From positions 1-56,386 of the forward strand of contig CBFFRP010000183.1 of assembly GCA_965644295.1 (NCBI GenBank): DNA of 56,386 nucleotides. Reading direction: 5' to 3'. Of this stretch, positions 46,456 through 56,386 are shown piece after piece. The first letter of the stretch is position 1, and each line of letters starts with the position of its first letter. The position numbers and the translations under genes were made by a program. A model generated the notes under the pieces. It made no database searches, had not been told where the DNA came from, and saw only the letters and a list, made by a program, of their open reading frames with translations. Source of the DNA: Paraphysomonas bandaiensis (lineage: Eukaryota; Protista; Chrysophyceae).

Positions 46456-47843
46456 CTAATTATTTTTTACTACCTCAGGCGAAGGCGAAACTATATTACT
46501 CTTTACTAGAACCTCAACCGTAGGTGTTTCTGGCTGCACTTCTGGTTTACGTTGAACATCGACCTCGCTTCTAGCAGATGAATTAACTGTTGAATATATC
46601 TTAAGTTGGCGTTCATCACTTGCTGCTAAGTCAGTGACAGGATTCGCTACTTCTTCACTATCAGCCGCGGAATCAAATTTTGTCCCCAACTCAACTTCGA
46701 TCGTACTAGGCTGTATTGTTTTGTTCTCGGCAGCACGCTCATTACCAGTTCTTACAACAATTGCTTGGTCTACATTCCGATTGTTAGCTGGACTAATACT
46801 ATGGGCTGAAGACGAAACGGCTGAAATTTTTGCAATGGGACCATCAGTACTATCTGCTGAGTCGTTTGTGGGATTTTCAACCTTAACCTCAATGCTTGTT
46901 TCAGATTCTTGCTTGCCATCTTTACCACCTGACGGCATAGTCGGCAATTTATCCTCAGCTTTCTCCGTAATTTGTAGAGGGGCAACATTAGAAACTTTAG
47001 GCTGGCCTGGTTGTGGTTTACTCAGCAGCTTGTTGGCTGGAAGAGCTCTGGTTACAAGTGGTCCTCGAGTAACAAGAGGTTTATCCGGGAGAGTCCTCAT
47101 GATGCTCGGAAAAGGGGGAATTTCGTCAATATTGTGAAGTTTCTTTAAGTGAGACTTCAAAGAAGTTTTACTACTCAATCCCTTGCCGCATGTCGTGCAA
47201 TGGAACTGAGATAAAACAATCACATGTTGAAATCATAAGTGACGCTTTCTCACCTTGTACTCTTTGCCTTGCTGTTGCGGCCTCGATGACGAATTCTTAG
47301 AAGATGAGCCATAATTACCACCCGTACAGTCAACTTGAGACATACCACACACAGAATATCGGCCAGAGAAGCTACAATGACTATTACGGAATAGCAATCT
47401 CATATTCAACATATCACCTCGCCACGGGAGTCACAGCTTCTGTGGGCGGCCCTTCATCCTGCCGTAGATCACGCATCTCATTATGTAGCCGCTTGCGTGA
47501 CGACTGTTCAGATACGCTGCATGCACCCTGTCTGGTATTAAATATCAACTGCATTGGTGAAAATGGGACGCACCGGCTCCGTGGTCGAATCCTTTCCCGG
47601 AGATTCTCCGTAGGCAACGTAGTTCCAAAGAGCAGAACAATTCAAAGGGTACAATTTCAGACCATTATCGTTCATGATTGTGCTAATTTGATCCCAGTCG
47701 AATTCCCATGCATCTGGGTTCTTATGTTGCCACGCCCTTATCGCCTGGCATAGAGCAGATGCCTGAAGAAATAGGTCATATTTAAATATCTGCAAATCAA
47801 AGCATACATGAGTGCTAATATCTTGATTCCAATCAAGCGACAT
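46456..47843 (-). CDS. Myb/SANT-like plus C2H2 zinc-finger protein, spliced
   Basis: DWDQIS..CSALWNYVAYG helix pattern; FHCTTCGKGLSSKTSLKSHLKKLH C2H2 finger; disordered tail. Exon boundaries not fully resolved. Confidence 0.7.
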
Positions 47844-48129
47844 TGCAAAGCTTGAAAGCGGTCTCTCAATACAAAATATATCAATCGTTGTCCATCACTG
47901 CCAAACAAGTGATAGATTTAGTCATCATACACCTACACATGCGATGTACATATTTATGTATAGGTGTATGCTTGGTATACAGTCAGATACATACAGCAGT
48001 ATACAGTATATACAGTGTATTCATTCACACTTTCCAGTTTCTCTATTCTTTCACAGCAGTCTGAGGTGTGTTGAGGGTTGATCTCCAGCCCTTCTTCATT
48101 ACGCACATTCTATAAAGAGAATAAGCGTG

Positions 48130-51100
48130 ATGGTTCCATATCTATTGGGGTTTTTATTTTTCTCGATTGTTTCGGCTGAACAAGATTCATATGTCGTCAC
48201 AAAGTACGATACTGTTGTTGGCGAGTCTTTGCTTGGGGGTAAGTATGAACAGTTGAATACATTGAACCTGGGGGACGATGATGTCACCAGGCTATCTCTG
48301 CCGTGGCAGTTTCCTTTTTTCTCTGATAAGTACTCTTATGGGTACTTAAGTAGTAATGGAGTATTATCATTCTCGAATGAGTTTGTTCCTGTTGGAATTT
48401 CATCTTCGCAAAATGAGAAGGAAGATGACGTTCATATAGCTGATGTAACATCCAGAATTTACAACGTTGTGTTACATCGACACACGTTGTCCAAACATAC
48501 GTATTCTCTTGCAGAGAACATTCGTAAAAATCACAACAACCGTGGTTGGCGTGGATTCAGCGGATATATACACAAGATTTTTCCGAGACTGCGTATGCTT
48601 ACGGTGAAGGATCCCAGCCCGGACGCACTCCACTATCTTCGATCAAACGAGCACGTTCTCTCAGTTCATGAAGAAAGAAAACTGACTGTCGAAGATAGGA
48701 GCTATCTGCGCTCCAAAAGGAAACTAACTTCAGATCCCTACTCATGGGGTTTGGATAGGATTGATCAAGATGATCTTCCACTTGATGAGGCCACATATAC
48801 CCCTCCATTAGAAACCAAGAAGGGTGCTAATGTGGATGTGTACGTATTAGACACTGGAATCGCCACTACACACGTTGAGTTTGAGAGCCTTCCTGGATAT
48901 GAGAGAGAGGTGAAAAATGTATGGGACGGATATATATCTGATGTCACTAGCCCTGATGCAGACAATGATGCTCATGGTATGTAGCAATGCAGTGAAGGAA
49001 TTGCCTGATAGCTTATTGTTTCTTTTTGTAGGACATGGGTCTCATTGCGCTGGAACTATCGGAGGGGTAAATGTGGGTGTCGCACCAGCTGCAAATATTT
49101 ATGGAATGAAAGTGCTATCCGACTCTGGCTCGGGATCTACGTCAACAATAATCGATGCACTGGAATATGTAATGGAACAAAGAAAAGCAAATACCACGCG
49201 TGGAATCGTGGTTTCTATGTCTCTTGGAGGATCTTGCTCAGCGGACTGTGAAAATGATGCCATTGTAGGGTATTCCTGCCAATTGTACATCTTATTGTGG
49301 TGTCATCATAGTAAACATGCCCTATCCGTATTGTATTGTAATCTACTGTTATTATGACAGGTCATTGCAGTGAATGAGTTAAGTCGGTATTCTATCACGA
49401 CGGTTGTTGCTGCAGGGAATGACGCCACGGATGCATGTACTAAAACCCCAGCCGCGGCCCAGACCGCCATAACTGTGGGGTCTACTACTAGCTTAGACGC
49501 CATGTCTTCGTTTTCAAATTACGATGTATGCGTCGATGTGTTTGCCCCGGGATCTAGCATACGAAGCGTGTGCTCAACCTGCTCTAGCCGGTCCTCATAC
49601 ACTCTTTTGTCGGGGACATCAATGGCGTGCCCACATGTTGCGGGTACTGTGGCACTCTGGCTGGCGATGACTTCTTCAGAATATATAATGGATCCTCCAT
49701 CTGCAGGACAGCTAGCAACTGCGGTTCAATGTACTGGAGCTTGGAACAAGCTCTCTTCTTTGGCGGGCAATTCTTATGATATCCTACTTCAGGTTCCACC
49801 GAAGGTTTCCAGCCTAACTGAAAGTTATGATTCTTGTGATCTCTTGTCAAATAACTGTGCAATTGGGAGCGGGGGTGCAATATGCTCTGGTCATGGAATT
49901 TGTTTTGATGATGGGGCCTGTCGCTGTGATACATTTTATGACGGTAATGACTGCAGCGAATATCTGAACAACTGTAGTCCAGAGTGTGGTGATCATGGAC
50001 GGTGCGTATTTGGGTGGTGCGATTGTGAGAGCGGTTGGTTCGGGACTCAATGTACTATGCCGTGTGTAGTAGACGGAATCGAGTGCTCTGGCCATGGCAT
50101 GTGCAGCAATACGGGATGTGCATGCGATGTCGAGTGGGGAGGGGACAGGTGCGATATTACTTGTGAAACGGTTGACGGAGAGGTGTGTTCAGGACAGGGT
50201 GTTTGTCGAGGGGGCAGTTGTTTGTGTGATAGTAAGTACACCGGGACAAACTGTGAAGAAGATTATTTTGACTACCTGTCTGATAGCTACTGCTGTGTTG
50301 GTAGTACTCTGGATGCTACTCATGATCCCCCCTTTGACGCGATCGCATTTTTCTGGACCGATCTAAACCCATCCTCTTCCTCCAGTGGCAATGTTTATGC
50401 AGGGTCCACTGATGATAATACTTTCGCAGTCGTGTTTGATGGTATTGTGCCGTATGGTGCATCGTACACGAGTTGTCTCCTGACGTTGGAATTGATTCTT
50501 TATGATACTGGAAACTTCGATATTGCTCTGGTATCGAACCGTATTGCACATGACCCATCATGCAGTCAGCATATGATATCGATGGGTATAAAGTCAGCTT
50601 ATCAGAATGGTAAACTACAATATGAACAGACAGAAGGTCCTGCGTATTATGGTCTTCCTCAATCCGCTTTGTACAGTTATAGACGTATTCTAACGATTCC
50701 CCCATCATCTTTTCCCACCATCTTTCCCACAGTTTCTTCGAAACCAACAATAGAGGTGACTAGCTCCTGCTTTCATGGAATCGATGACGAGATGATAGAT
50801 CTCGTTTCGGGAGAGCCTTTGACTTCGACCTGGGTAGAAATTGGTTTTGTAACTGTGGATGATCAGGCATGGGTTTCTGTGGTCACCTCTCTATCTACAT
50901 TCTCTGATGCTAGTGTGTTCATAAGCCTTCCCGATGTTCCTGGAGATACATCAAGTGAGGGCTATCCTGTAATTCCTCGGGTTCGCAATGTGGAGGTATC
51001 ATCCGGTCATGTCTCGTTTGAGGCTCGTCTGTATCAGGCCAACGATAGTTTGTGTTCCAAAGAGTGGCATATTCCTGAACCGGTGTCTCCAGCCCCATTG

Positions 51101-54100
51101 TTGACGTGGCTCGTAGCTGAACATGGAGCTTATGATTTGTCTGGTCGGCACATATTTGTTGGGAGTGGACCGATTACAAGACAGAGTGCTGACCCATCTA
51201 ACCGTGATAATTTTGTTCGCATCAATTACCCGTCAGGTTGTGGTTCCTCCACAACACTTTGTTCCTTTGCTGAAGATGTCGATATCGGAGTGATACTTCA
51301 ACTACAGACCGTGGTCTATGATCGTTTGTTGATACCTCGCGGGTTCAATATTGCGAGGCGATTTGGCAAGTATGTGATTCAACCTCATGATTCAGTAGAT
51401 GAGAGCTACTATGTAATGCTTCTGCCAGAGACACTGTCGTACATGGCATTTGAAGCTGGTATTTCTGTAAGCTGTGCGGAGGGCTGGACATTTGAGACCC
51501 ATACGTATTCTGGCGTCACGGATAGTCTTTTGCATATCGATTTCATCAATGAGTACATTTCACCTCCAGGTGTATTTGGCATTGTGGGTACTTCGACGAG
51601 TCTTGTCGACAGCACCGGTCTCCGTGTATTTAGTGTAACAACAACTGGAGCGAATATGATAACCCAGGAGGATCAGTGTGTAGACGAGGAGACAATTCAT
51701 ACCACGGGGGAGAGTGTGTTGGTGTTCGTAATCGGAGAGGGAGCAGCTTCATCAGATTGTATCTTATGCAAAGGTATTTTGAGTGATTCTGTTACTGGTG
51801 CACCATCACCGTCACCATCGACCTCCTCACCGTCGGTATCTCATAGCCCTACCTCTTTTCCTACCCATACATCTACACCAAATCCTACAAATGCGCCAAC
51901 TTTCCAACCGACGCATTTCCCCACTGTACCCCCGACTCTTTCACCAACTGTAGCAGGTACAGATGCATGTGACGGCGGTGTTGATGACGAGATGATAGAT
52001 CTCGTTTCGGGAGAGCCTTTGACTTCGACCTGGGTGGAAATTGGTTTTGTAACTGTGGATGATCAGGCATGGGTTTCTGTGGTCACCTCTCTATTTACAT
52101 TCTCTGATGCTAGTGTGTTCATAAGCCTTCCCGATGTTCCTGGAGACACATCAAGTGAGGGCTATCCTGTAATTCCTCGGGTTCGCAATATGGAGGTATC
52201 ATCCGGTCATGTCTCGTTTGAGGCTCGTCTGTATCAGGCCAACGATAGTTTGTGTTCCAAAGAGTGGCATATTCCTGAACCGGTGTCTCCAGCCCCATTG
52301 TTGACGTGGCTCGTAGCTGAACATGGAGCTTATGATTTGTCTGGTCGGCACATATTTGTTGGGAGTGGACCGATTACAAGACAGAGTGCTGACCCTTCTA
52401 ACCGTGATAATTTTGTTCGCATCAATTACCCGTCAGGTTGTGGTTCCTCCACAACACTTTGTTCCTTTGCTGAAGATGTCGATATCGGAGTGATACTTCA
52501 ACTACAGACCGTGGTCTATGATCGTTTGTTGATACCTCGCGGGTTCAATATTGCGAGGCGATTTGGCAAGTATGTGATTCAACCTCATGATTCAGTAGAT
52601 GAGAGCTACTATGTAATGCTTCTGCCAGAGACACTGTCGTACATGGCATTTGAAGCTGGTATTTCTGTAAGCTGTGCGGAGGGCTGGACATTTGAGACCC
52701 ATACGTATTCTGGCGTCACGGATAGTCTTTTGCATATCGATTTCATCAATGAGTACATTTCACCTCCAGGTGTATTTGGCATTGTGGGTACTTCGACGAG
52801 TCTTGTCGACAGCACCGGTCTCCGTGTATTTAGTGTAACAACAACTGGAGCGAATATGATAACCCAGGAGGATCAGTGTGTAGACGAGGAGACAATTCAT
52901 ACCACGGGGGAGAGTGTGTTGGTGTTCGTAATCGGAGAGGGAGCAGCTTCATCAGATTGTATCTTATGCAAAGGTATTTTGAGTGATTCTGTTACTGGTG
53001 CACCATCACCGTCACCATCGACCTCCTCACCGTCGGTATCTCATAGCCCTACCTCTTTTCCTACCCATACATCTACACCAAATCCTACAAATGCGCCAAC
53101 TCTCCAACCGACGCATTTCCCCACTGTACCCCCGACTCTTTCACCAACTGTAGCAGGTACAGATGCATGTGACGGCGGTGTTGATGACGAGATGATAGAT
53201 CTCGTTTCGGGAGAGCCTTTGACTTCGACCTGGGTGGAAATTGGTTTTGTAACTGTGGATGATCAGGCATGGGTTTCTGTGGTCACCTCTCTATTTACAT
53301 TCTCTGATGCTAGTGTGTTCATAAGCCTTCCCGATGTTCCTGGAGACACATCAAGTGAGGGCTATCCTGTAATTCCTCGGGTTCGCAATATGGAGGTATC
53401 ATCCGGTCATGTCTCGTTTGAGGCTCGTCTGTATCAGGCCAACGATAGTTTGTGTTCCAAAGAGTGGCATATTCCTGAACCGGTGTCTCCAGCCCCATTG
53501 TTGACGTGGCTCGTAGCTGAACATGGAGCTTATGATTTGTCTGGTCGGCACATATTTGTTGGGAGTGGACCGATTACAAGACAGAGTGCTGACCCTTCTA
53601 ACCGTGATAATTTTGTTCGCATCAATTACCCGTCAGGTTGTGGTTCCTCCACAACACTTTGTTCCTTTGCTGAAGATGTCGATATCGGAGTGATACTTCA
53701 ACTACAGACCGTGGTCTATGATCGTTTGTTGATACCTCGCGGGTTCAATATTGCGAGGCGATTTGGCAAGTATGTGATTCAACCTCATGATTCAGTAGAT
53801 GAGAGCTACTATGTAATGCTTCTGCCGGAGACACTGTCGTACATGGCATTTGAAGCTGGTATTTCTGTAAGCTGTGCGGAGGGCTGGACATTTGAGACCC
53901 ATACGTATTCTGGCGTCACGGATAGTCTTTTGCATATCGATTTCATCAATGAGTACATTTCACCTCCAGGTGTATTTGGCATTGTGGGTACTTCGACGAG
54001 TCTTGTCGACAGCACCGGTCTCCGTGTATTTAGTGTAACAACAACTGGAGCGAATATGATAACCCAGGAGGATCAGTGTGTAGACGAGGAGACAATTCAT

Positions 54101-56386
54101 ACCACGGGGGAGAGTGTGTTGGTGTTCGTAATCGGAGAGGGAGCAGCTTCATCAGATTGTATCTTATGCAAAGGTATTTTGAGTGATTCTGTTACTGGTG
54201 CACCATCACCGTCACCATCGACCTCCTCACCGTCGGTATCTCATAGCCCTACCTCTTTTCCTACCCATACATCTACACCAAATCCTACAAATGCGCCAAC
54301 TCTCCAACCGACGCATTTCCCCACTGTACCCCCGACTCTTTCACCAACTGTAGCAGGTACAGATGCATGTGACGGCGGTGTTGATGACGAGATGATAGAT
54401 CTCGTTTCGGGAGAGCCTTTGACTTCGACCTGGGTGGAAATTGGTTTTGTAACTGTGGATGATCAGGCATGGGTTTCTGTGGTCACCTCTCTATTTACAT
54501 TCTCTGATGCTAGTGTGTTCATAAGCCTTCCCGATGTTCCTGGAGACACATCAAGTGAGGGCTATCCTGTAATTCCTCGGGTTCGCAATATGGAGGTATC
54601 ATCCGGTCATGTCTCGTTTGAGGCTCGTCTGTATCAGGCCAACGATAGTTTGTGTTCCAAAGAGTGGCATATTCCTGAACCGGTGTCTCCAGCCCCATTG
54701 TTGACGTGGCTCGTAGCTGAACATGGAGCTTATGATTTGTCTGGTCGGCACATATTTGTTGGGAGTGGACCGATTACAAGACAGAGTGCTGACCCTTCTA
54801 ACCGTGATAATTTTGTTCGCATCAATTACCCGTCAGGTTGTGGTTCCTCCACAACACTTTGTTCCTTTGCTGAAGATGTCGATATCGGAGTGATACTTCA
54901 ACTACAGACCGTGGTCTATGATCGTTTGTTGATACCTCGCGGGTTCAATATTGCGAGGCGATTTGGCAAGTATGTGATTCAACCTCATGATTCAGTAGAT
55001 GAGAGCTACTATGTAATGCTTCTGCCAGAGACACTGTCGTACATGGCATTTGAAGCTGGTATTTCTGTAAGCTGTGCGGAGGGCTGGACATTTGAGACCC
55101 ATACGTATTCTGGCGTCACGGATAGTCTTTTGCATATCGATTTCATCAATGAGTACATTTCACCTCCAGGTGTATTTGGCATTGTGGGTACTTCGACGAG
55201 TCTTGTCGACAGCACCGGTCTCCGTGTATTTAGTGTAACAACAACTGGAGCGAATATGATAACCCAGGAGGATCAGTGTGTAGACGAGGAGACAATTCAT
55301 ACCACGGGGGAGAGTGTGTTGGTGTTCGTAATCGGAGAGGGAGCAGCTTCATCAGATTGTATCTTATGCAAAGGTATTTTGAGTGATTCTGTTACTGGTG
55401 CACCATCACCGTCACCATCGACCTCCTCACCGTCGGTATCTCATAGCCCTACCTCTTTTCCTACCCATACATCTACACCAAATCCTACAAATGCGCCAAC
55501 TCTCCAACCGACGCATTTCCCCACTGTACCCCCGACTCTTTCACCAACTGTAGCAGGTACAGATGCATGTGACGGCGGTGTTGATGACGAGATGATAGAT
55601 CTCGTTTCGGGAGAGCCTTTGACTTCGACCTGGGTGGAAATTGGTTTTGTAACTGTGGATGATCAGGCATGGGTTTCTGTGGTCACCTCTCTATTTACAT
55701 TCTCTGATGCTAGTGTGTTCATAAGCCTTCCCGATGTTCCTGGAGACACATCAAGTGAGGGCTATCCTGTAATTCCTCGGGTTCGCAATATGGAGGTATC
55801 ATCCGGTCATGTCTCGTTTGAGGCTCGTCTGTATCAGGCCAACGATAGTTTGTGTTCCAAAGAGTGGCATATTCCTGAACCGGTGTCTCCAGCCCCATTG
55901 TTGACGTGGCTCGTAGCTGAACATGGAGCTTATGATTTGTCTGGTCGGCACATATTTGTTGGGAGTGGACCGATTACAAGACAGAGTGCTGACCCTTCTA
56001 ACCGTGATAATTTTGTTCGCATCAATTACCCGTCAGGTTGTGGTTCCTCCACAACACTTTGTTCCTTTGCTGAAGATGTCGATATCGGAGTGATACTTCA
56101 ACTACAGACCGTGGTCTATGATCGTTTGTTGATACCTCGCGGGTTCAATATTGCGAGGCGATTTGGCAAGTATGTGATTCAACCTCATGATTCAGTAGAT
56201 GAGAGCTACTATGTAATGCTTCTGCCAGAGACACTGTCGTACATGGCATTTGAAGCTGGTATTTCTGTAAGCTGTGCGGAGGGCTGGACATTTGAGACCC
56301 ATACGTATTCTGGCGTCACGGATAGTCTTTTGCATATCGATTTCATCAATGAGTACATTTCACCTCCAGGTGTATTTGGCATTGTG
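48130..56386 (+). CDS. Giant secreted subtilisin (S8A, proteinase K-like) with EGF repeats, a split NIDO-like domain and 400-aa tandem repeats; 3' incomplete
   Basis: Exons 48130-48976, 49032-49264 and 49361 to the window end. Signal peptide; triad VLDTG, HGSHCAG, GTSMACPHVAG; oxyanion AAGN; 4 tenascin-type EGF repeats (CSGHGxC). Exon 3 reads open by manual translation, giving at least 2,702 aa. Confidence 0.92.
50783..56386 (+). repeat. Coding tandem repeat, 1,200-bp period, at least 4.7 copies
   Basis: Units start at 50783, 51983, 53183, 54383 and 55583. They are in frame with exon 3 (50783-49361 = 474 codons). Confidence 0.99.

Follow-up and report, generated by a model that had tools for sequence, protein, structure and literature searches.

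Contig CBFFRP010000183.1 (C183) of Paraphysomonas bandaiensis (Chrysophyceae) carries, on its + strand from ATG 48130, a eukaryote-type gene whose product places a subtilisin-like protease and EGF repeats between two stretches resembling a NIDO domain. We analyzed positions 1-56,386, a stretch of 56,386 nucleotides that is referred to here as the window. A preliminary description made from the sequence had proposed that a complete zymogen was inserted into the loop of one NIDO-like domain. The question is whether the two stretches are indeed halves of one domain and, if so, what such an arrangement would mean for a protease expected to cut itself from its propeptide. Shared profile matches, unsplit copies of the domain, a 13-strand fold, a predicted pairing of the two pieces and sequence conservation bear out the proposed nesting, and the assignment of both pieces to one NIDO-like domain, with the zymogen and EGF cassette nested in its loop, is supported. 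We consider it probable that this cassette of ~600 residues lies in a NIDO-like sandwich that closes from two pieces and clasps the activation cut.

The order of the protein is signal peptide, N-terminal piece of the NIDO-like domain (N-piece), linker, I9-like propeptide, peptidase S8 domain, four EGF repeats, C-terminal piece (C-piece) and repeats of 400 amino acids, all encoded on the + strand. The start codon and a predicted signal peptide of 16 residues occupy 48130-48177; its core is hydrophobic, small residues occupy positions -1 and -3, and the cut after VSA was placed by eye. The N-piece (48181-48372) comprises ~64 residues and five strands, the last being SSNGVLSF, and was delimited by hhalign, hidden Markov model (HMM) matches, the predicted interface and conservation. 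Exon 1 encodes its motif, LGDDDVTRLSLPWQFPFFSDKYSYGYLSSNGVLSF (48268-48372), 14 residues past the predicted signal-peptide cut. The C-piece (50276-50716; ~147 residues, eight strands), which was delimited by hhalign, HMM matches, the interface and alignment, opens with a CC.G motif and IAFFWTDL, and its motif IAFFWTDLNPSSSSSGNVY..FAVVFDGIVPY..TLELILYDTGNFDI runs from 50342 in exon 3. Both motifs lie exactly where the preliminary description had placed them. In the spliced protein, the SNG..SF strand and IAFFW are 606 residues apart, and between the two motifs we found the described cassette, namely the I9-like propeptide, the S8 domain and four EGF repeats. The repeats (49835-50263) are of the teneurin/tenascin type (Pfam EGF_Teneurin 8.7e-22 and EGF_2 6.9e-14, four stretches each). 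The pieces of the window gene were analyzed exon by exon, and intron-less paralogues served as proxies for the whole module.

In an ordinary NIDO domain the two motifs had been said to lie only tens of residues apart. This spacing is seen in the protein encoded on contig C563 of the same genome (locus L014), where the N-piece motif lies at residues 285-317 and IVPLWHDID follows at 338. A six-frame search of the 62.5 Mb genome with the N-piece led to its only Pfam-NIDO protein (E 5.8e-5), and the N-piece HMM scored 39.6 bits on the canonical NIDO of L014. Since the Pfam NIDO model on L014 begins within the last N-piece strand, the split in the window protein falls inside Pfam's own domain limits. 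The L014 protein itself (L014:1772-5977:-) has 1402 residues in the order NIDO, AMOP, VWD, MUC4-type C8, Sushi and a transmembrane segment (Pfam E-values for the five domains 1e-28, 4e-10, 6e-9, 1e-8 and 0.012); this is a MUC4/SUSD2-like, metazoan-looking order in a protist.

The two pieces were compared with a NIDO-family alignment (A8) of 224 columns and 20 distant contiguous members, 15 of which are Pfam NIDO domains, matching no other family. The N-piece corresponded to columns 34-75 (hhalign 98.7%, E 4e-16) and the C-piece to columns 85-207 (99.3%, E 2.4e-20). On a single profile, the matches thus lie side by side, in the same order and without overlap, as expected for one domain in two pieces and contrary to the refuting outcome, lack of a common profile, that the preliminary description had named. 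Among solved structures, the N-terminal region (residues 22-222) of the bacterial protein RemA, PDB 8gl6 chain D, matches the A8 profile (E 7.8e-24) and is the only entry found by sequence.

Copies of the same domain without an insertion also exist. In the homologues P0115 and P0121, an unsplit copy of the same subfamily follows the protein's own S8-EGF-C-piece; on these copies, N-piece HMMs scored 53-59 bits and C-piece HMMs 84-91 bits, with a gap of 5-8 residues between the matches, and the alignment of the unsplit copies places the join at the CC.G motif. Further unsplit copies are present in P0123, P0124 and P0222. A word-based search with the unsplit copy returned only itself and P0121. 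When a profile built from the two unsplit copies was run against 1.84 billion representatives, it recovered 2289 proteins at E <=0.001, most of which match through the split point in one stretch. In ~130 fetched proteins the N and C HMM matches lie 10-20 residues apart; a gap of 490-550 residues with the S8 His and Ser motifs inside was seen only in the split subtilase family.

The unsplit copy of P0115 (residues 441-645) is predicted to fold as one compact domain, with a predicted local distance difference test (pLDDT) score of 89.1 and a predicted template modelling score of 0.86. It has 13 strands, five before a loop at 62-80 and eight after it, and the model of a split paralogue shows the same 5 + 8 pattern in its two pieces. 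Surface proteins of bacteria and phages modelled in the ESM Atlas superimpose on residues 1-205 of the unsplit copy with template modelling scores of 0.79-0.85, and bacterial proteins with the same fold also carry gingipain, trypsin and cell-envelope proteinase domains. Comparison of the unsplit-copy model with solved structures revealed no convincing match: Foldseek had none at E <=0.001, and the best Z in a wide VIA search was 5.8. The domain is compact and all-beta in the models, extracellular as judged by the signal peptide and by transmembrane segments in relatives, and discontinuous in the window gene, with 606 residues inserted.

The N- and C-pieces of the window protein are predicted to assemble strand to strand. 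When they were modelled as two separate chains, the interaction prediction score from aligned errors (ipSAE) was 0.81, 0.81 and 0.86, compared with 0.00 for the best control of three; in calibration, 51 of 78 solved complexes and 2 of 108 mismatched pairs attained the ipSAE mark used. The runs had at least 86% of their contacts in common (208-223 contacts), with a partner pLDDT of at least 83. GVLS (N-piece 60-63) pairs with AIAFFW (C-piece 22-27), which places the insertion in the hairpin between strands 5 and 6. The first strand of the domain, VVTKY, pairs with the last, LYSY. Modelled with an unrelated chain, the N-piece and C-piece reached a pLDDT of only 37 and 51; together they reached 83-86 and 72-83, respectively.

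A search for the same order elsewhere, as the preliminary description had recommended, was productive. It occurs at no fewer than four other loci of the genome, on contigs C92, C297, C137 and C342. C92 encodes a protein of 702 residues in an uninterrupted frame of 722 codons (L011:2672-4720:-); directly upstream of this paralogue (L011:4857-5687) lies a long microsatellite-like run, read as IHTY/MYVC in translation. The C297 protein (959 residues) is identical to P0001, a complete MMETSP1103 transcript labelled Paraphysomonas. On C137 (L010:1890-9998:-), three complete split modules lie in one uninterrupted frame of 2703 residues, which continues into an extended P/T/S stalk, one more domain and a membrane anchor. 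Across these three modules, the propeptide-S8-EGF-C-piece portions are near-identical, and the N-pieces differ. C342 also has modules in tandem, with an intron that interrupts them at the same His site. In marine assemblies, roughly a dozen other clusters share the order (P0002-P0011, P0176 and P0185), with two modules in tandem in P0002/P0003. Single-module members are the window gene, C92, C297/P0001, P0004, P0005, P0006, P0008, P0010 and P0011.

Conservation was measured as mean pairwise identity over ten non-redundant modules. It was highest in the S8 domain (55.1%), followed by the N-piece (40.7%), the C-piece (37.4%) and the propeptide (33.6%), and fell to 12.7-13.6% in the two linkers. 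Because N-piece identity matches that of the C-piece while the linkers are variable, the N-piece is constrained like a folded element. In a tree of the C-part, split copies and unsplit copies of the same subfamily form one supported clade (96/93), and the distant contiguous domains fall outside it. The second module of P0123 (residues 445-715) has a loop of ~70 residues containing a linker and one EGF, with neither propeptide nor S8 domain; it could be either a natural excision intermediate or a skip in the gene model. Unless that model is faulty, the loop accommodates ~6, ~70 or ~600 residues, as the unsplit copies, P0123 and the split copies differ in this way.

The gene model was compared with public contigs of the same organism. 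The start is ATG 48130; the GTG at 48127 given in the open reading frame listing lies one codon upstream. Exon 1 extends to 48976, exon 2 covers 49032-49264, and exon 3 begins at 49361 and stays open until the window, and with it contig C183, ends, so that the gene's 3' terminus falls outside the contig. Intron 1 (48977-49031, 55 nt) and intron 2 (49265-49360, 96 nt) are both of the GT..AG type. Two contigs from two runs, X1 record 1 (2612 nt) and X2 record 9 (2560 nt), align on 48072/48124-48975, 49031-49264 and 49361-50834, skipping 55 and 96 nt and thereby removing both predicted introns. The DNA contig X10 is unspliced and contains both. Thus, single spliced RNA-type contigs cover 48072-50834 on the + strand, from the 5' leader through the C-piece, indicating that the N-piece and C-piece are on one messenger and not, as the preliminary description had allowed, on different transcripts.

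The public runs differ from the window at a few bases. At 48140-48141 all covering runs, including the DNA contig, have CC where the window has AT, changing Tyr to Ser in the signal peptide, and there are a few further single-base differences (48502, 49254). These mismatches reflect either variation between strains or a misassembly of the window.

Judged by its sequence, the enzyme is a proteinase K/aqualysin-type subtilase, secreted or surface-anchored. The S8 domain is encoded in three parts: 48745-48976 in exon 1, containing the catalytic Asp (48850-48852); 49032-49264, the whole of exon 2, with the catalytic His (49034-49036; Pfam Peptidase_S8 5.3e-11); and 49361-49801 in exon 3, with the oxyanion Asn (49418-49420) and the catalytic Ser (49619-49621; Peptidase_S8 2.9e-18). 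On the intron-less paralogues the Peptidase_S8 match reaches 4e-42. The tetrad is intact, with Asp in DTG, His in HGSH, Asn in AAGND and Ser in GTSMA. The nearest solved relatives of the catalytic domain are aqualysin-1 (4dzt, 3.1e-62) and proteinase K (1.7e-58), and PCSK9 is also among its sequence matches (1e-35).

Upstream of the enzyme, a poorly conserved linker of 28 residues (48373-48456; mean identity 12.7%, pLDDT 23-30 in the paralogue model) leads from the N-piece to the putative I9-like propeptide (48457-48711). In the AlphaFold model of a paralogue, the propeptide has the order beta-alpha-beta-beta-alpha-beta with a pLDDT of 86-92 (strands 98-103, 133-138, 143-147 and 163-168; helices 109-124 and 151-158). 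Inhibitor_I9 (PF05922) matched five of nine aligned homologues at E values up to 1, the best being 0.003 and all of them below the cut-off; the L013 propeptide gave E 0.19 against the I9 model. We called the segment a propeptide because of this fold pattern in the paralogue, the sub-threshold I9 matches and its position directly before WGLDRIDQ. The propeptide-enzyme junction (48712-48744, ..SYLRSKRKLTSDPYS; 13.6% identity) was placed by aligning WGLDRIDQ with the mature N-termini of aqualysin and proteinase K; it is the region of expected autocleavage.

In the arrangement that we favor, the cassette of propeptide, S8 domain and four EGF repeats occupies the loop of the strand 5-6 hairpin, and the sandwich, predicted to close from its two pieces, would span the propeptide/enzyme junction, acting as a clasp. 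Because the junction lies inside the loop, self-cleavage of the zymogen would leave two chains joined by the sandwich. The N-fragment, consisting of the N-piece, a tether of ~28 residues and the propeptide, would stay non-covalently attached, so that the tethered propeptide could be held at high local concentration near the active site until a second cut or degradation freed the enzyme. In tandem modules, a clasp at each cut would keep the upstream fragments on the membrane-anchored remainder. Inhibition by such a tethered propeptide, as put forward in the preliminary description, is plausible; the retention of cut fragments by the clasp is a consequence that we add. That the sandwich is a purpose-built clasp, providing a permanently tethered, re-bindable inhibitor and allowing self-cleaving zymogens to be strung together yet remain assembled on the cell surface, is a further step that we regard as possible but doubtful.

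Several observations weigh against this reading. Pfam NIDO (PF06119) had no match on the N-piece or the C-piece, even at E 10, nor did it match the unsplit subfamily copy (P0115:440-660); its gathering score is 25 bits, and the positive control L014 scored 101-105 bits. As Pfam is blind to both pieces, the link to NIDO was made through profiles. The predicted assembly comes from one language-model two-chain prediction, whose scores express model confidence rather than a measurement and which may recall contiguous domains of the same fold, the very resemblance at issue. AlphaFold modelling of the whole paralogue module with 12 sequences was poor (mean pLDDT 56.9) and yielded no contact information, and this model was used for secondary structure only. 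The window's own propeptide gave no I9 match, and the propeptide profile found no match among PDB sequences. Proteinase-K-type enzymes normally degrade their own I9 propeptide, and lasting inhibition is not the default. In the tandem proteins, only ~60-70 residues separate a C-piece from the next N-piece, and a permuted pairing would be feasible given that the domain's first strand pairs with its last. Finally, the backbone of the C-part clade is unresolved, and the unsplit copies could be ancestral or could be secondary, produced by excisions after a single insertion.

Of the alternatives, the one that survives best accepts the nesting but makes it non-regulatory: the sandwich would be a binding or scaffold module, the propeptide would be degraded as usual, and the N-strands would simply stay. 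The established fate of I9 propeptides in proteinase-K-type enzymes fits this, as does the occurrence of S8 followed by contiguous NIDO-like repeats in the unrelated proteins P0190, P0199, P0209, P0252 and P0254. The company that the fold keeps in bacteria, where it occurs with gingipain, trypsin and cell-envelope proteinase domains, points the same way, and the EGF-only loop in the second module of P0123 indicates that loop contents vary. However, in every member seen the propeptide is contained in the loop and comes directly after the N-piece, and without a bridge the tandem proteins (three modules in C137, two in P0002/P0003) would shed their upstream modules. We judge a scaffold role without regulation to be unlikely, though compatible with the data.

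Less probable still is that the N-piece pairs with the C-piece of a neighboring module, giving a circularly permuted domain, or with that of another molecule in a domain swap, the pairing then driving compaction or oligomerization instead of bridging the module's own cut. In the two-chain prediction, the pairing of first and last strands brings the two ends of the domain next to each other; the segment from the C-piece of one module to the N-piece of the next is a P/S/T-rich linker of ~60-70 residues; and the prediction itself is blind to cis versus trans. Most members have a single module, however, leaving only cis or intermolecular pairing, and in P0115, P0121, P0123 and P0124 what comes after the last split module is a complete unsplit copy rather than a lone N-piece.

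We regard as very improbable the view that the N-motif stands as a mini-domain of its own or is decaying as a remnant, with the C-piece a truncated, self-folding NIDO-like domain, and that their likeness to two halves of one domain is coincidental. The lack of a Pfam NIDO match in either piece and the low confidence of the full-module model would agree with it. It is countered by the colinear, non-overlapping matches on one profile, the unsplit copies that join the pieces at a gap of 5-8 residues, and N-piece conservation equal to that of the C-piece. Moreover, each piece folds poorly with an unrelated chain and well with its counterpart, and the N part makes up five of the 13 strands of one compact domain. 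Chance resemblance or a relic N-piece is thus largely refuted by profile, unsplit copies, conservation and pairing. A gene-model artefact that joins pieces from different genes or transcripts, for which one could cite the two introns and the contig end within the gene, has a negligible probability and is refuted by the single spliced X1 and X2 contigs from two runs over 48072-50834, with the same order in the uninterrupted frames of C92, C297 and C137 and in the complete MMETSP transcript P0001.

Two further features of the window were noted. Downstream of the C-piece, a 1200-bp (400-amino-acid) tandem repeat with a P/T/S-rich spacer runs on the + strand in the same frame from 50783 to 56386, where the contig ends. 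There are at least 4.67 copies, starting at 50783, 51983, 53183, 54383 and 55583, and they are 99.4-100% identical; the copies were measured by script, as the unit exceeds the maximum period of 500 of Tandem Repeats Finder. Public assemblies collapse the repeat and break off at 50783/50834, where it starts. The 400-residue unit had no Pfam match, and an Atlas feature search with it gave weak leads only (a diatom hypothetical protein, 0.92; an H-type lectin, 0.82), with no clear relative. Upstream of the gene, a frame on the - strand (46456-47223) encodes a C2H2 zinc-finger-like motif (HCTTCGKGLSSKTSLKSHLKKLH).

The components of the window protein are of known kinds: the NIDO superfamily, a proteinase-K-type S8 enzyme with an I9-like propeptide, and EGF repeats. 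Their arrangement was suspected at the outset to be undescribed, and full-text literature searches found no account of a self-processing, multi-domain guest in a small host that spans the guest's activation site and is multiplied in tandem. The one co-mention of NIDO and peptidase S8, in a coral paper, lists them as separate proteins. Database entries of these proteins carry only Peptidase_S8 or EGF labels; because proteins are labelled only Peptidase_S8, standard annotation misses the architecture entirely. In most domain insertions, a single small domain occupies a loop of a bigger host. In the window protein, the guest is a self-processing cassette of several domains and ~600 residues, and its host, a beta-sandwich of 200 residues that carries the guest in a hairpin, extends across the site at which the guest is activated. 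Should the clasp prove real, the family would be a natural system for fold complementation and would add a new mode of zymogen control to the subtilase family that includes PCSK9. It would explain how tandem zymogens stay together after cleavage and, if the clasp is purpose-built, would represent a new build for multi-enzyme surface arrays with natural regulation by fold complementation. The NIDO fold, for which no function is known even in nidogen, MUC4 or tectorin, would gain a structural role that can be tested.

Compared with NIDO as defined by PF06119 and SMART (nidogen, MUC4, SUSD2, alpha-tectorin, SNED1 and the organism's own C563 protein), the split domain is likewise predicted to be all-beta, with ~200 residues, and both contain DD..v.LPF.FpFfG..Y..i.vSsNG.lSF, IAp.W.DL..G.iyY, F.V.w..V, tFq..L...G and vGi. 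It differs in having ~600 residues between the SNG..SF and IA..W.DL strands, and the split subfamily has its own CC.G motif and two more conserved cysteines. With proteinase K and aqualysin (MEROPS S8A) the enzyme shares the catalytic domain, the WGLDRIDQ start, the tetrad and a propeptide directly upstream. Here, however, the propeptide is not N-terminal but is preceded by five strands of a domain completed only later, EGF repeats and the NIDO-like piece follow the enzyme, and whole zymogen modules occur in tandem.

Nested architectures involving subtilases are known from the PA domain of plant subtilases, C5a peptidase and lactocepins. That case is the inverse, as the subtilase is the host of one small guest, whereas here the zymogen and EGF repeats (~600 residues) are the guest of a 200-residue host. 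P0190, P0199, P0209, P0252 and P0254 are secreted proteins that also combine these two types of domain, but their NIDO-like domains are unsplit and follow the enzyme, with the propeptide outside them.

Non-covalent retention of cleaved chains also has precedents. The SEA domain of mucins, the GAIN/GPS region of adhesion GPCRs and the vWD region of MUC4 with its GDPH cut are cleaved inside a folded module, whose strands keep both chains joined at the cell surface without a covalent bond. In those modules the cut is self-made and falls within the fold, whereas here the nested protease would cut its own propeptide junction and the domain holding the chains is unrelated to theirs. The proposed mechanism resembles that of PCSK9, of the same S8 subfamily, whose prodomain is not released on autocleavage but remains attached and blocks the enzyme. 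In PCSK9 this retention is due to the prodomain's own binding; in the protein described here, it would be due to a separate domain that straddles the cut.

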